Source: Guillardia theta CCMP2712 (taxonomy: Eukaryota; Protista; Cryptophyta). From it: DNA of 64,000 nucleotides. This document shows positions 1-48,821 of the stretch, piece after piece. The notes under the pieces are model-generated. The model saw only the letters and a program-made list of their open reading frames with translations, made no database searches and was not told the DNA's origin. The stretch lies in contig NW_005434658.1 of assembly GCF_000315625.1 (NCBI RefSeq), positions 649,139 to 713,138 of the forward strand. The letters are read 5' to 3'. How positions within the stretch are numbered: position 1 is the first letter of the stretch; each line of letters begins with the position of its first letter. Both the position numbers and the translations under genes were made by a program.

Positions 1-1012
1 GGACTTTTTCTTCGATCCCCCAAGGCAGATCCTGACAAGGGAGGACGAGCCCTTAGTGAGGAGGCTGCGATTCGAGTCGATCTTTCAGAGGAAGTTCTGG
101 TGTGTTTCCTTCTTCCCCCATCGCTGCCCCCTCCTCCTTCCTCCTCACTTGGTCGACGTGCAGGTCCCCCGAATCGGAGAGTGCTTCCGGCCCAGGCTCG
201 AACGCCGACATGACAGCGGGCGTTCAAGAGCTTCTCCACGAGGTGGGGCTTAGCCCACAGACCTCGTCCTCCTCATCGCTGCTGTAGGTGATGACCGACC
301 TTGGCCTCAGCTCCCTGCTGGATATAGGATGCGGGGACTGGTTTTGGATGAGCAGGACGAACTTGACAGGAGTGAGATACGTGGGTGTGGACATCGTGCA
401 CGACATCATCGCCTCCAACATCCGCCATGTGCAGCAGAGGACGAGAGAGTGCGCGGGCGGTGGGAGCAGCCCGGGCGGCGCGTGCTCCTTCCTTCCCCGG
501 TCTGTGCGTTTCGGGCAGGAGGACGCGGTGCAAGGGCTAGAGCCTGCCATGTGTGAATACCAGGAGGAGGGGCAGGTGCGGGCGGGATGCGAGCTAATCT
601 TTGTGAAAGAAGTCCTAATCCACCTAACTATCAATGACATCAAGAAGGTTCTTGACAACATTCAGGTCCTCCTCTTACGCTTGCGCCTTCACCAACCCGC
701 GGTCTGATGCTGTCCTCTCAGAATCTCTCGCTTTCGCTCCAAGGAAACCCGCACTACAGGTTCGTCTGCTCTGTCAATACTGGAGCGTCATCATACTCTG
801 ACTGAAAACTTTCGAGCAGCACGAAGCAAAGATACCTGCTAGTCACGCACGACTCGACTGTCAAGGTCAACAACGACGAAACCATCACTTCCTTCTCGCT
901 ACCTGGAGGAGGCTGGAGGCCTGTCAACCTCTATCTCCAGCCATTTCTCCTGCCCCCGGCGCTGGTAGAGTTCGAGCAAGGGTTCTCCCTGTGGAAGCTT
1001 CCCTTCGAGTGA
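1..1012 (+). CDS. Class I SAM-dependent methyltransferase (5' part lies outside the window; spliced)
   Basis: Spliced translation gives SESASGPGS...LLHE|VMTDLGLSSLLDIGCGDWFWM...YVGVDIV (motif I plus acidic motif II), then KEVLIHL and C-terminal WRPVNL..PF; stop TGA at 1010-1012. Confidence 0.8.
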
Positions 1013-1679
1013 CTGGTCGAACCGAACACAAGTTTGAAGCTCAGTCGAGCCAAGAGGTACGATCCTGCCTGCTGGTCCCGTGAGCCTGTGAGTATGGTCC
1101 GATCGTTGGAAAACATCACCAGGAATGAAATGCGTTAGCTCAGATTTTAATGAATTCAATGAGGTAAAGAACTATCATTTCTCTGACTTCTCTCCACCAC
1201 TGTCCGCTCTTACTCCCATTCTGTCCAACCTCCTCCTTTCTCCGTTCTCCTCCCTCCGTCCTCAATCCTCCTACTCTTCCTCCCTCCCTCCTCCTGCTCT
1301 GGACTTTATCATCCCCTTCTTTCACATGGCGAACAATGTCAAGAAGTCACCCTCCTGCCCCCACATGGTACGCCTAGCTAGTCAAAGAATGGGGGAAGTG
1401 GGGTACTCGTGTGGGAAAGAGTGGGGTGGGGTAGAGGCAAGGGGGGGAATGTGTGGTTGTCAATCGCGTGACCGGAGGGTCCGTCCGCGCCCCGACGATG
1501 CAGGTTGGGCAAGGGAGGCGGAAGGAGGAGACGAGGGAGAGGAGGGAGAGGGGGAGACGGGGGAGGGAGTAGATAGCAAGAAGAAGATGGCGACAAGTTG
1601 AGAGGCGAGGCCAGGACTGGAGAGGAGAGCAGAGGAGGGAGAAGGGAAGGTGAAGTCAACAATGGTACTGGTACGACAT

Positions 1680-4644
1680 GTTTGCTCTGGACAAAATAAA
1701 CCTCGCATCTGATAGCTGTGCTGACGCTGAGAGGTCTTCTGACTTGTGGTGATGATACAGATTGATTGATTGCACCTCCAAGAGAGCTTGTTCCTGCCGT
1801 CGTCTCTTTGATTTCCGCCTCTCCGACCGCCTGAGAGTTTGGAGCGCAACAGACTACTAGGCGACGAATTCTCCTACCCTTGACTTGTGAGCTATCGTCA
1901 TCCTATGCTGCTAATATGCTGCTCTGCGCTGAAATGATGCGGATGATAGCATATCACACATCTAGAACACCGAAAAGATGTCATTCATGACATCAAACAG
2001 CGGAGTCCGCGAGAGCAGGTTGAGTACACTTCATGTCGCGTCTTGATCGTCTGTGATCAGCTTCGCAGGATTATGCGCAAGATGGATGAAAACCTGAAGG
2101 TGAGCAGACAGCAAGAGGAGGCGAAGGGCGGGGCAGCATGAGGGACGAGAGGCTCACCCGAAGCGTTAGATACAACACGATGCTGAAGACCTCGAGTGGA
2201 TCCGAGAAGTCGACTCTCGTGAGGGCGCACGAGCTTGTGAAGGTGCTCTCACGCTCATGTTAGGCATGTATGTCAAACAACGATATATCACCGTCCTTGC
2301 GGTCTGTCGAGCATACACCCTCCTGCTCGCCTGATAGTTGTGTAACGCTTCCCTTAGCTGGTAGGACTCTTCACATCGGTCATCGTAAGGGAGACTTGTA
2401 TGCGAAGGCCCATGGAAGAGAGGTCCTGAGGATCTCTCCTAGAACAAGACTGACATGCTGTAGGTGCGAGGGACCCTTTGTCAACCTGCTCAAGGCCGGG
2501 ATCACAATCAGCACCATCATCATGCTCTTCTTCATGTGGTGATGGAGACGAACAGTGCAGCACGGCAGCTAAGGGTCCATGCAGGCAGCAGATGGAGCTG
2601 GCGCTGGAGAGCGAGGACGCCCAGCAGAGGTTGATCGACAGAGATCACCGGCTGCTGGCCGACAGCCGAAGCGTGAGGCAGACGTGCTTCCAGCGGCTCA
2701 AGGTCTCCCGTGACACCCGCCTGCCGTCTCGTCTCCTGATGTACTGCAGCGAATCGTGAGATCGAACCTGCTCACATGGACCTTGTTGTTTCCTCTCAAC
2801 ATGATTCACCCCCTTCCAGGTTTTCCCCTCCGGCATCCCCTGCTCGGGACCCGGCAGTCTGACATTCACTCAGGGTACTCCAGGATGTGGACGATTGAGC
2901 AGCTGGGAATACAGCCTGTCTACCGTGTAGAATCGCTGACCTCCGCTGCCATGCTGATCCGGTTCGATGCTGCTCATCGTGTCGCTCCCTCCTCCCGGCT
3001 CATCTCTTCCCTCGCAGCGTGTACCACATCTTCATGCTGATCAAGCTCAAGCTGCTCACCAAGTACCTCAGCCTCGACTCCTCGCTTATCATCCGCAACG
3101 AAAACGCTATCAAGCAGATGAACGACCCCAGCTTGTCGCAGCCTGTCCTGGCGATCAAGATCGCTCTCACTCGTCAACCTATGTACCTCATCGGCACCTG
3201 CTGGGCCGTTCTCATCTTCGCTGCAACATGGATCATCAGGATCTCCGAGAACACTCCCGGGAACCTTTTCAGCGTCTACGTCTGGGATCAGCTCTGGCTT
3301 GTCATGGTAACAAGGTGATTCAATGCTACTGCTGCTGCTGCTGTCCCTGCTCCTGCTCCTTGATCCTGCTCCTTGATCCTGCTCCTTGATCCTGCTCCTT
3401 GATTCTGCTCCTGGTGAACGTTTCACTGCAGCACCACAACGGGATACGGAGATGTTGTTCCCCACACTCACTTTGGGAGATTCGGGGGGATGCTGTGTAT
3501 GACCGCGGGGCCCATTCTGATCTCGATCATGACCGCCACCTTCTCTAGGAGTATGACGCTCAACCCGCAGGAGACGAAGCTCATGCGCACGCTGGACGGG
3601 GACAAGAAGCAGAGCCAAGTCATCATCGTGGCTGCCAAGATGATTCAGCTGTGGTGGAGGGGACGCACGCGGATGCTGTGGTTCAATCCGGACAACGAGA
3701 TGTCGATGCGCCGGCTGCTGGACCTGGAGGACGAAGACCGCGAGAGGATGGAGAACCTCTTCTGCCAGCTGATGGAGGCGCAGCAGAAGCTGAGGCGCTT
3801 CAAGAATCAAGTGGGATATCATGAGGTTGGAGAGAGCACGGAGCAACCAGATACTGCGAAGAGACGCGGGAGCATGGAGAGGAACTCCTCGAACATCGCC
3901 AACGCGCTCATGCTCGCATACCAGCAGCAGAAAGGAACGAGTCTAAAGGAGAAGGTTTCCCAGGCAGGGAAGCGGAGGGGGAGTCAGGATTCGGAAACGA
4001 ACGATCCGGAGGATGTTACAACTTCTGCTCTGACAGGAGCAGGAGAGGGAGGCAGAGGAGGCAGAGGAGCGAATGACAGTGGGGCCATGCAAGACAAATC
4101 CGAGCTGAACCATCGTGACTACCTTGCTGCACTTTCAACACTATCGGACCAGGTTTCTCCCTCATGCTCCTTCTCTTTCTCCTCCTAACTCCTCCGACTC
4201 TTGCATTCTCAGGTCGGCGAGCTGCGCAAAGTCACCCTCCAGCAAGGCCGCATGCTTGCAAGCCTGTCAAATTCCATGGCCTCCATCGAGAGCAGCCTCC
4301 ACCTCCTGGCAATCTCCCCTCCTCCTCCTCTGTCCTCTCACTCACTGCTCGGTGTTTCCCAGCTGCCGGATCTGCACGTACCCAAGAGAAACTCCGAGGC
4401 CATCAAGCACAGCCCGCGAACTCCAGACACTCACAGGAGAAGCCATGAAGTGAGTCCTCCTCCCTCCTCCCTTCCTCCTGATGCTTTCCAGTCGCACGGC
4501 CAACCCCCTTCGAGCTCCCTCGCCCCACGGCGAAGCAAGTCTGGTGAGTTCGAGAGAGGGAGAGGAAAGATGGAGTGGAGAGGAGGAGTGGAGGGGGGAG
4601 GAGAGGATGCAGTGACTGTTGGAGCTCAGAAGACGAGCTGGTGA
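1680..4644 (+). CDS. Small-conductance Ca2+-activated (SK/KCNN-like) potassium channel; start approximate
   Basis: Exons encode LLKAGITISTIIML, NMIHPLPG, AAMLIR, pore WLVMVT|STTTGYGDVVP (~3295-3462), an S6 helix, then LNPQETKLM...AAKMIQLWWRG (CaM-binding region); stop at 4644. Confidence 0.8.
3328..3411 (+). repeat. Intronic (TGC)n and (TGATCCTGCTCCT)n tandem repeats
   Basis: Visible in the intron that splits the channel pore helix. Confidence 0.8.
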
Positions 4645-43733: not shown

Positions 43734-43831
43734 CTCAGGCGTTCTGTTGTTGTCACGTTGACGACCCTGCGAGCAAATCAGCAGCAGCCCTAAATTTCAG
43801 TCGATCAATCTTCAGGCGGGAAGCTAGTGTT

Positions 43832-44238
<407 letters not shown>

Positions 44239-45280
44239 CACACGGGGGTCAGGGGGGAGCATGAGGAAACGCTGCGGAGAAGCATCAGAGCGCCCGTTGA
44301 ACCGTTTGAGCGAATGGAATAACGAAACAAAAAAGTTTTGGATCTTCCGCAGTATTCTTTAGTCAAAGCTAAGTAAAACATTAGTACCATATTATACGAA
44401 CGGTCCATATATATACAAAGGTTGACAGTAGCTGCTTGTGAATTTTGTTTAGAACTGTTCAAAATATCGATCACTATCACTCAAATATTCTTTTACCTAA
44501 TCATGTTTTAAATCGGATTGTCATCCGAGGCGGACCGTCGGACAGCGGATCGGACCGGCCGGGCCGGTCGGACTCCGGGACCCGGGATGCCGGGCCCTGG
44601 CGCCAGCCCGGGCCGGGCGGCTGCTCCTCACAAAGTTCTCTAGTTCGAAAGAGTCGAGTCCGGCCGCGCGGCAGTCGGAGCAGCTCCCGGTCGCCGCGAC
44701 TCTCGGTGAGGGCCTCCCGGGCGGCACGAGCCGAGCCTGTTCCCGACTCCCAAGTTGAAGCACGCGGCATGATTTCAAACTTCTGTTTGGCCCGGCCCGC
44801 CCCGGTCACACCAAGGGGCTGAACTTCGGAAACCGGGGGCCGCAGTGGACCGGTTCACTTGAGCCCGGAGTCAACGGTTTGGGGGCTCGGGCCCGGCCGC
44901 CCGGACTCAGTTCCGGGAACTTCCGAAAGCAGTGCCGCAGTGCCACCCGGTGACGGGCAGTCTGAGTTAAGTCTTCGAATAAACTAACTGAGCCCGGTAA
45001 GTTGAACCTCTCAGGCTCCCAATTGCCAATGTGAACGGTTTGCCCTTTGTAGTCTATTATCAGTTCACTTATATATCTCACTTATTCACATGGTATCAAG
45101 TACAACACTGTTGAAGCCGCACAGCCTCGCACGTCGACCTCACACGTTCCTCTGATGCAGCAGCCGGGCTCGAGCTGGAATCACCCCAGCAGCTAACCTG
45201 CCTCTACCCCCCACCAAAAAAAAATTTCCCCCTTGCTGTCTTCCCCTACCAGCGCATGATCTCACTTCCCTCTTCTTCCC

Positions 45281-48051
45281 CTACAGCATGACGAGCTTTA
45301 CACCGAGCGGAAACTCGAGCTTCGCGGTGGACTCGTTGAAGACCTGGACAAGAGTCAGAGGAGGGCGGACGGGGAGCAGCCGACTGACCGTCATCTTGTA
45401 CAGGCGACACGCAGGGGGGCGAGACCCTTCTACAGCTTCGGCTCTCGTGAAGAAGAGGTGGGTCACCCACTGCTTGAATCTCGGGGGATGGATCAGTTGG
45501 CCCTTGCACGAGTAGAGAGTCTCGGACAGATCCTCTGAGCCGATCTCTTCCTCCTCCACGCCATGGCAGAGCATCTGCACCTGAGGAGAAGTCAACGGGG
45601 TGCGAGCAGGGTCGGTAGGCCCCCACTCACTTTGGTCTCCTCGCCGCTCTCGAGCCCTGCAGGCTGCCCGCTCAGCATGCGGTCGGCGATCATGGTGCCG
45701 GTCGCAAGGCGGAACTTGGTCCGCTCGTTGAAATTTCTGATGACGTCAAGCTCTTTGTCACCAGTCTCGAACAAGTGCGAGACAAGAGATTGTATCAGCA
45801 TCTGCTTGCTCTCTGGCTTCGTCATGATGATCCCGAACCATGCCTGCGCCAGCGCAGGGAGCGTGTCGTTGCGGTTCGACGCCCCGTGCTCGTAGACGAG
45901 CTCCAGGTACTTCCTGCTTCCGACGTCGTACACCCTATTCTTGATCAAGATCTCAATGTTGTCCTTCCTCTTCACCACCCAGTCAAGGATCATACGCTGC
46001 CCTCTCGTCGCCATCCCTTCCTCGAGGCTGGCGACCTGGTTCAGCTGCGTCATCCGCTCCTCGTCAAACCACATCTGGTTGACTGTGCTCCTCCTCTCCA
46101 GCAGTTCGTGGTGATCCCTGTTCCCCTCGTTGCTGATGGGGATGATCTCGAACTCTTGGGGGAAGGTGTACTCCTGCAGGCACCACATCCTGTTCTCGTA
46201 CCAATCTTCCTTCTCCAGCCTCGTGTCCCCAGAGTTGTCAAAGGCCAGCACAACCCCAGCTGAAGAGTAGAGCGCCACCATTCGAGGAATAAGAATGTTC
46301 CTCATTTCTCGTTTCTTCTCCTCGTATTCAAGGTCTTTCGCTTCACTGCTGTTCACTTGAGGGATACAGAACTGATCCATCCAGACATAGTCCTCTGTCT
46401 GCTTTGACAGAGCCTTGATCAGGGCGATCAACTGCGGTTCGATCATCGTCACCACCCAGTCGAAGCCGTCGCTGTTGCTGTGGCGAATCCTGAAGCATCG
46501 GGGAACACTCGAAGGATCATTCTGCTTCTTCATATAGAGTTTGCGGTCGGACCAGCGGTAGCTCAGCACCACGGCCAGTTCAACTCGATCTTGGCTGGCT
46601 AGGTACATGGGGACATCCATGGAACACTGGATGTCACCAGCATCCGACTCTTTCTGCTTTCCCTCGTCCTTGCCAGACTCTTGCGAGTCGTCCTTCGTGA
46701 CACCTGCTGCGTCCTCCTCGCCCTGGAGAACAACATGCGTGAAGTTTGATTCACGACTCTCCTCCAAGATCCGCTCCAGCTCTTTCACAAATGCAGATCG
46801 CAGCATAATCAAGCCGTAATTGTTGCGTTTTGGCCTATCCAGGAGATCCTTCACGCTGTATGACTTGTCATCCACAATGAAGATCGTACATGTCAGAAGA
46901 AAGCAGATGAAGAACAAGATGCTGGCAAATACATAAATTTGTCCCAGCGCACCCAAGTGAGATAGAGCACACCCTCCGAACCAAGGGATGTTCATGAAGA
47001 GATAAAAGGCTTGTAGAACTTTCCGCTTCGGGCGCGAACTCAGCATAAAGATCTTGCGGGACAAGCTCCACTTCTTCGGCAACTTTGCAGGCTTGTCCTT
47101 CTTCCTTCTCTTCAGTATCTTTTTCAAAGGATAAAATATCAAGTTGAGGACCCCAAAATCGATCAATGCCGTCACAAGCGTCACTGTGTACATGAAGGGA
47201 GCGAAGAGGTAGCGCCTCTTGGGGTTCACTGCTCCGTACGCTCCCAAGCTGATCACGAGGAATGGGATGAAGCCCAACCCAGCAATCACCACAGCGATAG
47301 ACTGGCGAAACTCTGTTCGCTGAACCCATGCTCCGATGACAGGAAACCTCCATTCCTTGATGGTCAAATTCTCTAGTTCCTTGGATTTCAAAGTGAAGTC
47401 GCTGCTGGAGCTCAGTACGACAGTCTTCAGGATGATGCCAAGTGATACTCCCAACCAAACAGCATATGCTGAGATGTAAAGCTGCAAATCACAGCTGAAA
47501 CAGCTGTTTGCACCATAGGCATACCCTGCTGCCGTGGGATCGCCCGCAAAAATGCACTGGCTGTTGTCGATGACAAAGAATTTGATGGTCATCGCGCAAA
47601 TCAACAGCAGCCATAGAAGGATTGCAGCGTCAACAAACCTGTTCATCGCACGGATCCTCGTCTTCTGTGCATCACACAAATCAGAGGTGCAGAGAGCTAG
47701 CGCAGTCCTATTCTCCTCTTTCACGCTTTGCCGCCACATCCCAAAGAGCGACTTGTAAAAGATCAGGAGCGTCCACCAGACACTGTGAAAGCAGAAAACC
47801 CCGACGCTGAGGTAGAACAAGGGGATGACTGCTCCCTTCGAAGCTCCCTCGAGGTCACGGAAGCATCTCCCTCGGAGGTATGACCACAAAAGAAAGTAGA
47901 GCAGCAGTAACAGTTGAACGACCGTGAGCCCTCTGATGAAGGTGGAGAAGGAGGACAGTTCTACTCCTGGAAGCTTGATATACATCCATTGCTTCTGACT
48001 GTGACTGGACACGTGGATCCTCTTGCTGTACATGCGATTGAGAGGCTGCAT
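45281..48051 (-). CDS. Multi-pass (~8 TM) membrane protein with C-terminal HET (heterokaryon-incompatibility, TIR-like) domain
   Basis: 819-aa ORF plus a last exon; eight hydrophobic segments in the first ~395 aa; HET motifs in order VLSYRWS, YVWMDQFCIPQ, RMVALYSSAGVVL, WYENRMWCLQE (~46580-46165). Confidence 0.8.
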
Positions 48052-48821
48052 GTTGCCACCGCTTTACTTCCACTTGTTTGATGTGGAGGAAGCGAAGGCC
48101 AGGAGTAGGTCAGATGCAACAAGATGACGCCTTCATCAGAGCCGTATCAACTTGTACTCTTGCCATGGCTCTGTATGCCTCCTCCCTTGCCCGCCATGCC
48201 CTCCTCCCGGGCTCAGCACCGATCCCAGCAGCCATGCTGCCGCATCCGTTGACCTCTTTAGAAGTGATTTTAATCGTTTACTCCAAAAGTTGAAAGCGAG
48301 ACCGTGACATTTGAATTCTCTTCAAAGTTAACCGCCCTGCCACCGCCAGCGCCGGGGCCCGGACCGGGCCCAGTTTCAGTGTCTCCGGGCTACAAGAACC
48401 GACCGTTCAACGGTTAGAAGTTGATTGACAACTGGCGGACGGTTGAAAGACTCCGACAACTGACCACCCCGCCGTCGCAAGTACCCTGGAGCTTCCTGGA
48501 GTACCCCAATGTTTCCCCGCTTATTCACGGGTAGATCATCACTACCGGCTCCTGGTCCACCCCCATTGCAATAGCAAGTTCACTGGTGGATTCACTGTCA
48601 GGGGGTATCTGAAATTTTATTGGACCTTTTCAATCATTGCATCAATGTGATCAAATGAGTCAAATATTGATGAAATCGGGATAGTCCCCTACTTTTTACC
48701 ACAATTTGCCGAGTAATTAGGGGTACTTTGCTAGCAAAGTATTTTTCCTGTGGGTGCATCATCTGAACATGATTTCAAACATTGGATGCTTTTGAGAATT
48801 CCCCTCTCCATAGGATTCTGC

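Follow-up and report, generated by a model that had tools for sequence, protein, structure and literature searches.

An eight-helix membrane domain joined to a HET domain in a protein of the cryptophyte alga Guillardia theta

The alga Guillardia theta encodes a protein in which a newly defined eight-helix membrane domain is joined to a HET domain, one of the most abundant cell-death domains of fungi. We describe the gene, GUITHDRAFT_135671, whose whole coding region lies at positions 45281-48051 (minus strand) of the window, that is, the full 64,000-nucleotide stretch of the G. theta CCMP2712 genome that was analysed (contig NW_005434658.1, positions 649,139 to 713,138). It is a genuine nuclear gene, spliced and expressed, for an integral membrane protein of 891 aa, and the combination of an eight-helix membrane domain with a HET domain, here predicted to be cytosolic, is not described in the literature searched, which also holds no paper on this gene. 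Arguing by analogy with fungal HET and with TIR proteins, we put at about 45% the probability that it acts as a one-chain switch in the membrane, for signalling or cell death, in which the HET domain would most plausibly cleave NAD+.

The gene model, equal in length to the database protein XP_005836974.1, consists of one exon of 2,421 nt, the 2.4-kb intron-free core of an earlier note on this DNA, followed by two small 3' exons. The parts of the gene and its transcript are as follows.

45079..48214, minus strand: extent of the transcript contig from run X1, with ~163 nt of 5' UTR and ~200 nt of 3' UTR flanking the coding sequence
45631..48051, minus strand: exon 1, codons 1-807, from the open reading frame list and the mapped splice donor; it encodes everything from the N-terminus through the 8-TM domain, juxtamembrane segment, acidic linker and HET domain to the helical region
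45581..45630, minus strand: intron 1, 50 nt, GT-AG, from the gene model, with the joint in runs X1 and X2
45389..45580, minus strand: exon 2, aa 808-871, where the C-terminal beta-rich domain begins, from the gene model and transcript; homologous to the C-termini of the paralogues
45344..45388, minus strand: intron 2, 45 nt, GT-AG, from the gene model, with the joint in run X1
45281..45343, minus strand: exon 3, aa 872-891 and the stop codon (45283-45281), from the gene model; position 45281 is the end of the stop codon

A spliced transcript contig of 3,077 nt from run X1 spans the gene in three blocks (45079-45340, 45386-45577 and 45628-48214) and lacks both introns; the joint across the 50-nt intron recurs in run X2. 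Run X15 (raw RNA reads, 2026) contributes 10 reads, chiefly from the 3' end, too few for an expression level. The 819-codon open frame from 48051 to 45592 (minus strand) is exon 1 with read-through into the 50-nt intron, and no other in-frame start lies upstream (open frame 823 aa, against 819 aa for the ORF). An orthologue transcript, P0063, reads straight across intron 2.

The earlier note had suggested a search for further proteins that pair membrane helices with a HET domain, and such copies exist: the family numbers four paralogues of the same architecture in G. theta. Orthologues occur in Hanusia and related cryptophytes, at a small and stable copy number, and other relatives come from metagenomes and probably from Nephroselmis; in all, 27 matches were found among 1.84 billion representatives. 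A profile search for distant relatives returned family members only, and six-frame comparison of the ~10 kb that flank each of the four paralogues on either side (E 1e-5) revealed no conserved partner gene. Measured against an orthologue of 75% identity, dN/dS is ~0.15 overall, 0.09 in the TM domain, 0.12 in the HET domain and 0.72 in the acidic linker: the gene is under purifying selection. Because the 819-codon frame is conserved, spliced and under purifying selection, it cannot be chance. Fungal het loci are hypervariable and undergo lineage-specific expansion; strong purifying selection and low copy number set this family apart from such allorecognition loci.

These data bear on whether GUITHDRAFT_135671 is a functional host gene at all, rather than an annotation artefact, a contaminant, a pseudogene, or the cargo of a virus or transposon. 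A 2.4-kb exon without introns in an intron-rich genome could point that way, as could the three other paralogues, each a single uninterrupted ORF. However, the transcript is spliced at two spliceosomal introns, dN/dS is low, the four loci have neither flanking sequence nor neighbour genes in common, no relative occurs in 2.9 million viral contigs (IMG/VR), and the gene sits on a contig of ~1 Mb. This explanation is largely refuted, and we regard it as highly improbable.

The protein is built as the earlier note had sketched it, with a multi-pass membrane part fused to a HET domain. The former is a domain of its own.

46873..47940, minus strand: eight-helix transmembrane domain, aa 38-393, from hydropathy, AF2 helices and conservation

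Where about eight hydrophobic helices had been proposed, hydropathy gives 7-8 hydrophobic segments and an AlphaFold2 model of the membrane half gives eight long helices (pLDDT 73, pTM 0.75). The domain matches no known family or fold. Against Pfam, all 24 members yield scattered sub-threshold matches only; Foldseek finds no match in the PDB (E >= 0.12); comparison by shape with the ESM Atlas gives TM-scores that never exceed 0.29 by query and are mostly under 0.36 by target; a VIA-wide structure list reaches Z of at most 6.7, within noise for helical bundles; and the language-model atlas holds no usable match. Among known multi-pass families (GPCR, pannexin/connexin, tetraspanin, MFS and others), none fits in sequence or fold: GPCR-like rows are at noise level, as are pannexin/connexin rows (Z 5.2-5.9, rmsd up to 8.4 A). 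We conclude that aa 38-393 constitute a family not previously described. The domain is more than an anchor, since TM4 is its best conserved segment (71-96% identity among paralogues), Lys209 in TM4 is invariant across the family and Asp298 in TM6 is nearly so.

The orientation of the helices can be predicted from the charges of their loops. Averaged over 19 family members, Lys+Arg per loop amount to 2.7, 9.1, 3.4, 8.2 and 6.1 on one side of the membrane (~30 in total) and to 1.4, 0.7, 0.4 and 0.4 on the opposite side (~3 in total). By the positive-inside rule applied to these loop charges, both termini and the HET module are predicted to be cytosolic, the sidedness that the earlier note had put up for checking, and the Cys-rich loop would face outward or into a lumen. 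One predicted cytosolic loop harbours a conserved NRT sequon and a Cys pair, which counts against the predicted topology. The Cys-rich loop, also recorded at first reading, is placed as follows.

47488..47565, minus strand: Cys-rich loop joining TM3 to TM4 (aa 163-188) and predicted to be exoplasmic, from alignments and loop composition

It contains on average 0.7 Lys+Arg and 3.1 Cys. All four G. theta paralogues keep C166, C184 and C187 without change, and across 20 family members only C184 stays nearly invariant. The sequence of the loop is variable, and some relatives carry a long insert directly N-terminal of it.

Two segments of different character connect the membrane domain to the HET domain.

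46747..46872, minus strand: conserved juxtamembrane segment, aa 394-435, from the AF2 model and conserved motifs
46618..46746, minus strand: acidic linker, predicted disordered, aa 436-478, from pLDDT < 50, the alignment and the dN/dS of 0.72

The juxtamembrane segment (model residues 1-40) is modelled at pLDDT 83-96, with a strand (20-23) and a helix (24-39) that lie right behind TM8 and adjoin the HET fold. The acidic linker described in the earlier note is present, yet it is specific to this copy: it is an insertion restricted to GUITHDRAFT_135671 and its orthologue and is missing from the three paralogues.

The conservation of the membrane domain, equal in degree to that of the HET domain, raises the prospect of reversed roles, with the HET domain as sensor, regulator or signal generator and the eight helices as the effector, a channel or pore able to depolarise the membrane or make it permeable, in the manner of bacterial defence effectors that contain membrane modules. 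The high conservation of TM4, the invariant intramembrane Lys and nearly invariant Asp, and the weak, non-significant pannexin/connexin echoes would fit such a scheme, and the tight juxtamembrane coupling seen in the model could pass a conformational change either way. Against it, the structural matches are at the noise level of helical bundles, nothing points to an oligomeric pore architecture, and in fungi the HET domain alone suffices for death and is thus the executor there (PMC10197012). We consider reversed roles quite improbable.

The HET assignment itself draws on sequence profiles, motifs and predicted structure.

46132..46617, minus strand: HET domain core, aa 479-640, an alpha/beta fold with four HET motifs, from Pfam, the ESM Atlas and PDB-wide structure alignment
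46171..46185, minus strand: WCLQE, W623-E627, from alignments and the AF2 model
45631..46131, minus strand: region behind the HET core, aa 641-807, from AF2 helices, conservation and the reach of the Atlas alignment

Pfam HET (PF06985) matches aa 495-572 with an E of 1.4e-5 and 25.9 bits, above the gathering score of 22.5, in an alignment that covers positions 3-65 of the 146 in the profile. Among the relatives, 23 of 26 match at E<=1 (best E 5.5e-8), and several relatives individually fall below the PF06985 cut-off. The canonical blocks of the domain are SYxW, W-x-D-x-x-C-I-x-Q, a hydrophobic strand and R-x-W-x-x-Q-E (PMC4540973). Here the four motifs occupy aa 496-500, 555-565, 591-605 and 617-628, in the canonical order, and 20-26 aligned sequences show them invariant or nearly so; motifs and Pfam score together uphold the original assignment. 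In the fourth motif, R, W, Q and E are invariant in the 26-sequence alignment; its glutamate, Glu627, is nearly invariant in the 20-row full-length alignment and lies on a short helix behind the third core strand in the AF2 model. Conservation and analogy make Glu627 a candidate catalytic residue. UniProt already names XP_005836974.1 automatically as HET-domain-containing.

Structure comparison points the same way. Ten of the ten ESM Atlas rows listed are fungal PF06985 clusters (99 nearest models, one row per family set). The alignments cover 216-332 residues, and the TM-scores reach 0.66 by target and lie at 0.35-0.48 by query, predicted models standing on both sides of the comparison. The region behind the core includes a conserved helical bundle with the motif ASNRND...LAQAWFGIIMT (model helices 302-368), and the C-terminal module as a whole, ~400 residues, comprises the HET domain with helical and beta-rich extensions, as in fungal HET proteins. 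For the C-terminal beta domain, a Het-6_barrel (PF26639) is possible: one ESM Atlas row suggests it and Pfam, at E up to 1, fails to support it. Sequence searches of the PDB (phmmer, hmmsearch) gave nothing real, only two chance matches to ACE2 (E 0.2-0.3).

We compared GUITHDRAFT_135671 with fungal HET proteins, namely HET-6, TOL and PIN-C of Neurospora and HET-E/D/R and BH of Podospora. The motifs agree in set and order (SYRW; WMDQFxIPQ; a hydrophobic strand; RxWCxQE), the first 63 of the 146 Pfam positions align by sequence, and for the whole module of ~250-330 residues the predicted fold is closest to that of fungal HET proteins, possibly down to a HET-6-type barrel-like C-terminus. The host, in contrast, is an alga, and the HET module follows the eight-helix domain, whereas the fungal module precedes NACHT/WD40, ankyrin, TPR or lectin domains, or stands alone. 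The fungal families are large and hypervariable; the family described here is low in copy and under purifying selection. Pfam searches of the whole protein and its relatives found HET alone, with no NACHT/NB-ARC NTPase, WD40, TPR or ankyrin repeats. The earlier note had held that HET domains are usually attached to NACHT/WD40/ankyrin NLRs; this does not hold, as most fungal HET proteins are not NLRs (PMC10197012).

The resemblance to TIR domains is fainter. In PDB-wide structure lists, TIR and nucleoside 2-deoxyribosyltransferase (NDT) chains rank on top for aa 487-660, at Z 4-5.5 over 94-118 residues with an rmsd of 3.5-4.7 A; Z values below 8 may reflect a common arrangement only. The TIR matches include IL-1RAcPb, SpbK, SARM1, ThsB, SPARTA, MyD88 and RPS4, and their Z (at most 5.5) is not set apart from that of flavodoxin-like folds such as azoreductases (Z 4.0-4.4). 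Foldseek finds no match in the PDB for the HET half. No TIR family of Pfam matches GUITHDRAFT_135671 even at E up to 10, whereas genuine TIR_2 domains of G. theta score 43-68 bits. Profile-profile comparison (hhalign) of the HET core (24 rows) with 11 G. theta TIR domains, based on shallow alignments, gives a probability of ~1% in local and global modes; the match extends over 23 columns only, helix A and strand B, in the expected register. Of the HET/TIR fold looked for by structure, then, the HET part stands and the TIR part does not go beyond weak similarity.

The HET core is predicted to have a three-layer alpha/beta fold, in which it weakly resembles TIRs. Its conserved Glu follows a Trp at a distance of four residues (WCLQE) and sits on the helix that comes behind the third strand; in the G. 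theta TIRs the equivalent position behind their third strand has Cys-x-x-Glu (NCRRE). The HET core differs by a beta-hairpin inserted behind strand 1 and by a longer loop ahead of the Glu, and it has neither a TIR Pfam match nor a significant profile-profile match. Lapin 2022 (PMC9153377), citing Dyrka 2014, equates the HET QE glutamate with the catalytic Glu of TIRs. A 2025 review lists the biochemical activity and structure of HET domains as 'not determined' (PMC12881547), and according to a 2024 paper the way in which they induce death is not known (PMC10890737). With even fungal HET biochemistry in this state, immune, cell-death and NADase roles of the algal protein are putative.

The best single structural neighbour of the HET core is an NDT (Z 5.5), with CD38 lower (Z 3.3-3.6). 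All are of one broad fold class; the entry titles name nucleoside ligands for the two NDT chains and NAD-derived ligands for several CD38 chains. The matches show no sequence similarity and are too weak for homology or common chemistry. Taken with the strong purifying selection on the folded parts (dN/dS 0.09-0.12), the small, stable number of copies and the orthologues known from Hanusia and related cryptophytes, and the conserved charges of TM4 and TM6, which suggest a transport or ligand site, these neighbours would suit a housekeeping or second-messenger membrane enzyme. Such a protein would process nucleotides or nucleosides in the manner of TIR, NDT or CD38, making or destroying a signal (e.g. 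of the ADP-ribose type), with the eight helices as transporter, channel or localiser. On the other hand, all HET proteins of known phenotype act in cell death or incompatibility (PMC10197012, PMC10890737), the TM domain matches no transporter or channel fold, and so patchy and rare a family is unusual for housekeeping. We take this alternative to be unlikely, if worth keeping in mind.

For the one-chain switch that we favour, a sequence of events can be proposed. The membrane domain would sense a ligand, a membrane state or a partner, or would cluster in the membrane, and so bring HET domains together. The HET domains would then act through the conserved pocket formed by SYRW, WMDQFxIPQ and RxWCxQE, most plausibly in the way of TIR domains, through cleavage of NAD+ or a related nucleotide. 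Signalling or cell death may follow, for example in antiviral defence or in self/non-self control. Counting against such a switch are the weak match to TIR folds, a mode of selection and a copy number unlike those of fungal het loci, and the absence of a conserved partner gene within 10 kb of the four loci. A role as an immune or cell-death receptor is, by analogy, a reasonable hypothesis. A narrower version is doubtful: unicellular algae would have in this family a one-component membrane receptor for immunity or self/non-self recognition, whose variable, Cys-rich exoplasmic loop detects viruses, foreign cells or mating partners and directly activates a cytosolic HET enzyme that depletes NAD+ or makes a nucleotide signal and so kills or arrests the cell. 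If it were true, the protein would be a multi-pass analogue of Toll-like receptors, and the first HET protein with an activation that could be studied from outside the cell. Toll-like receptors likewise join a membrane-spanning part to a cytosolic TIR-like domain; the membrane part here, however, has eight helices instead of one, and there is no LRR ectodomain.

The earlier note did not know this architecture from algae. No TM-HET protein and no cryptophyte HET gene is described in the literature searched, but HET genes have already been reported in green algae, moss, stramenopiles and haptophytes (PMC4540973, PMC4986451). The family offers a small and conserved set of non-fungal HET proteins with a defined membrane domain, little redundancy at four copies, clear orthologues and one conserved Glu to mutate. 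Should the protein prove to be a switch for death or immunity, it would matter for the way in which viral infection and bloom collapse are controlled in unicellular algae. It also extends HET/TIR-like modules to cryptophytes and probably to prasinophytes; G. theta has no fewer than five HET loci, of which this family accounts for four, and 17 or more TIR loci.

It is firmly established that GUITHDRAFT_135671 is expressed and conserved and encodes a membrane protein of eight helices with a fungal-type HET module, which the positive-inside rule places on the cytosolic side. The protein read from the window (C16:649139-713138 in the 87.1-Mb, 669-contig genome) is identical to this hypothetical protein (XP_005836974.1; UniRef L1JNX5, automatically named 'Heterokaryon incompatibility domain-containing protein'). 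An 819-codon open frame runs on the minus strand from an ATG at 48051, upstream of which lie only four sense codons and a stop; comparison with paralogues identifies its last 12 codons as intron read-through. The interval singled out in the earlier note, 45281-48051, is exactly the coding region of a three-exon, 891-aa model.

Exons and introns of GUITHDRAFT_135671
48051-45631, minus strand: exon 1, 807 codons
45581-45630, minus strand: intron 1, 50 nt, GT-AG
45580-45389, minus strand: exon 2
45344-45388, minus strand: intron 2, 45 nt
45343-45281, minus strand: exon 3, completing the 891 aa

A 3,077-nt contig assembled from a public run (X1) spans 45079-48214 with both introns precisely absent, and the joint of the 50-nt intron is also present in a second run. 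Since the spliced form can come only from RNA, this contig confirms the model and shows that the gene is transcribed. One low-depth contig, from run X3, carries a single A>C at window position 46266 and otherwise equals the reference; an error or strain variation could explain it. Within the family, introns, both very short and at the 3' end, occur only in the window copy, the three paralogues being intronless; a 75%-identical orthologue, P0063, is a transcript-like contig and says nothing on introns. Just downstream of the 3' end lies a low-complexity repeat of ~400-700 bp (window 43753-44480), which reads by frame as long Pro-Ala, poly-Leu or Glu-Gln runs and yields spurious ORFs on both strands.

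The reading of about eight hydrophobic helices stands: Kyte-Doolittle analysis gives 7-8 hydrophobic stretches, and AlphaFold2 (24-sequence alignment; pLDDT 73, pTM 0.75) models eight long helices, at roughly aa 38-60, 72-98, 140-162, 189-212, 248-274, 282-306, 344-365, and 372-393. Lys and Arg are distributed very unevenly among the loops, here named by the helices they join.

Lys+Arg per segment, means over 19 full-length relatives
Proposed cytosolic side: N-terminus 2.7, L2-3 9.1, L4-5 3.4, L6-7 8.2, post-TM8 6.1; sum about 30
Proposed exoplasmic side: L1-2 1.4, L3-4 0.7, L5-6 0.4, L7-8 0.4; sum about 3

Under the positive-inside rule, this charge pattern predicts a cytosolic location for the HET module and for both termini. 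The Cys-rich L3-4 loop (mean 3.1 Cys, variable sequence) would then be exoplasmic; in some relatives a long insert with N-glycosylation sequons sits just N-terminal of it. A caveat on this topology is that a conserved NRT sequon and a Cys pair sit in a loop assigned as cytosolic.

The eight-helix domain does more than anchor the protein passively. No other segment of the protein is as well conserved as TM4, in which paralogues share 71-96% identity and which holds an invariant Lys209; Asp298 in TM6 is the same in all four G. theta copies and nearly invariant family-wide, and the 41-residue L2-3 loop combines fixed length with a strongly conserved motif. The domain matches no known family or fold in the resources searched: Pfam returned scattered sub-threshold matches, Foldseek against PDB no match (E >=0.12), ESM Atlas TM-scores <=0.29 by query, VIA Z <=6.7, the noise level for helical bundles, and a language-model search no match.

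The HET assignment proved sound. Over aa 495-572 the Pfam HET profile (PF06985) scores 25.9 bits against a gathering score of 22.5 (28.9 bits with the C-terminal part scanned alone), with only the first 63 of 146 profile positions aligned, and 23 of 26 relatives match at E≤1. All expected blocks are present and conserved.

HET blocks, each invariant or nearly so family-wide
S497-Y-R-W500
Y555-V-W-M-D-Q-F-x-I-P-Q565
Strand at aa 600-605
Y618..R621-x-W-C-x-Q-E-Y628

AlphaFold2 (26 sequences) models aa 395-891 with pLDDT 79.9 and pTM 0.79 as an alpha/beta core, a helical bundle (aa 696-762), and a beta-rich C-terminal part (aa 809-890). Disorder is confined to one loop and the acidic insertion at aa 436-478, the linker noted earlier, which is specific to the window copy. 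Directly after TM8, aa 395-434 form a strand and a helix with pLDDT 83-96, so the folded cytosolic part begins near the membrane. All ten ESM Atlas matches listed are fungal HET-domain clusters aligned over 216-332 residues, which extends the likeness to fungal HET proteins well past the Pfam core; the TM-score against a 285-residue basidiomycete HET fragment is 0.66, and one match bears HET plus Het-6_barrel.

The fold resemblance to TIR came out weak. Foldseek against PDB gave no match for the HET module, and no sequence-related solved structure was found. In exhaustive structural alignment against 48,161 PDB representatives, aa 487-660 placed nucleoside 2-deoxyribosyltransferase (NDT; Z 5.5) and TIR domains (IL-1RAcPb, SpbK, SARM1, Hydra TRR-2, ThsB, MAL, MyD88, and RPS4; Z 4.0-5.2) at the head of the list; a further structure search added the SPARTA TIR at Z 4.7, but generic flavodoxin-like reductases scored almost the same. 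The TIR/NDT pattern is coherent with the published remote HET-TIR homology (Dyrka 2014, PMC4986451), while the Z values prove at most a shared alpha/beta arrangement. Aligned by hhalign (shallow alignments) with 11 G. theta TIR domains, the HET core reached a probability of about 1%, the sole aligned stretch being helix A and strand B in the expected register; by eye, VFLSYQWG, CWFDVEGG, and NCRRE of these TIRs run parallel to the HET blocks. According to Lapin et al. 2022 (PMC9153377), a functionally important glutamate is common to HET and TIR. Since neither activity nor structure had been determined for any HET domain by 2024-2025 (PMC10890737, PMC12881547), 'HET NADase' is hypothetical throughout the field and not just for this protein.

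Genuine TIR_2 loci in G. theta number at least 17, among them L019-L028 and others (for example C150:11249-11533, C149:91910-92233, and C23:11346-11669). About ten copies are closely similar and lie within unbroken open frames of about 1,200-1,370 aa, where the region preceding the TIR gives a sub-threshold match to COR-B (Roc-COR); they form a multi-copy ROCO-like/TIR family.

The search for TM+HET paralogues proposed in the earlier note recovered three more G. theta copies (C86, C382, and C42) and a relative in Hanusia phi. Each paralogue shares the architecture and is encoded by one unbroken ORF of 822-832 aa from the first ATG (835-852 aa in the ORF list); the three are 41-42% identical to the window copy, and among themselves they share about 60-80% identity; no shared flanking genes were found at the four loci. 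Exhaustive HMMER over 1.84 billion cluster representatives gave only 27 hits, from G. theta, Hanusia phi, a transcript attributed to Nephroselmis pyriformis, and short eukaryote-like metagenome contigs, the two weakest being ordinary HET proteins lacking the eight-helix domain; no relatives were found in viral contigs. Apparent 'TM-only' relatives were fragments of full-length members. The Nephroselmis sequence, a partial MMETSP transcript (P0049, 557 aa) attributed to this prasinophyte green alga, has the TM domain and HET blocks, with altered motifs (YVWWDQLCNLQ, RVWTFQEY); contamination of the culture could lie behind the attribution.

Comparison of the window copy with P0063, at a dS of about 1.1 (near saturation), gave low dN/dS in the TM, HET, and helical parts, indicating strong purifying selection on the folded parts.

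dN/dS by region
Overall: 0.15
TM domain: 0.09
HET: 0.12
Helical region: 0.12
Acidic linker: 0.72
N-terminus: 0.32
C-terminal beta part: 0.32

Judged by analogy, the protein would most likely work as a membrane-anchored switch: the eight-helix part would respond to a stimulus or cluster within the membrane, and the HET module would execute via its conserved Glu-containing pocket. The output may lie in cell death or immunity, in metabolism or second-messenger signalling, or in the gating of the eight-helix domain itself; purifying selection and the small number of copies lend real weight to a non-immune role. The earlier observation was borne out, and its interpretation gained partial support. 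The eight-helix membrane plus HET architecture was not found in the literature searched. HET genes are already known from green algae, moss, stramenopiles, and haptophytes (PMC4540973, PMC4986451), so what is new here is the fusion and the membrane domain rather than the presence of HET in an alga.

G. theta also has a fifth HET gene, L010, which encodes no membrane helices (C69:297851-298096; ORF 643-3192) and bears the motifs WSYRW, KMWIDKVCVPQ, and RAWTYQEA. An internal start reading Met-Gly-Gly-Cys-Val-Ser would suit N-myristoylation or palmitoylation, another means of bringing HET to a membrane.
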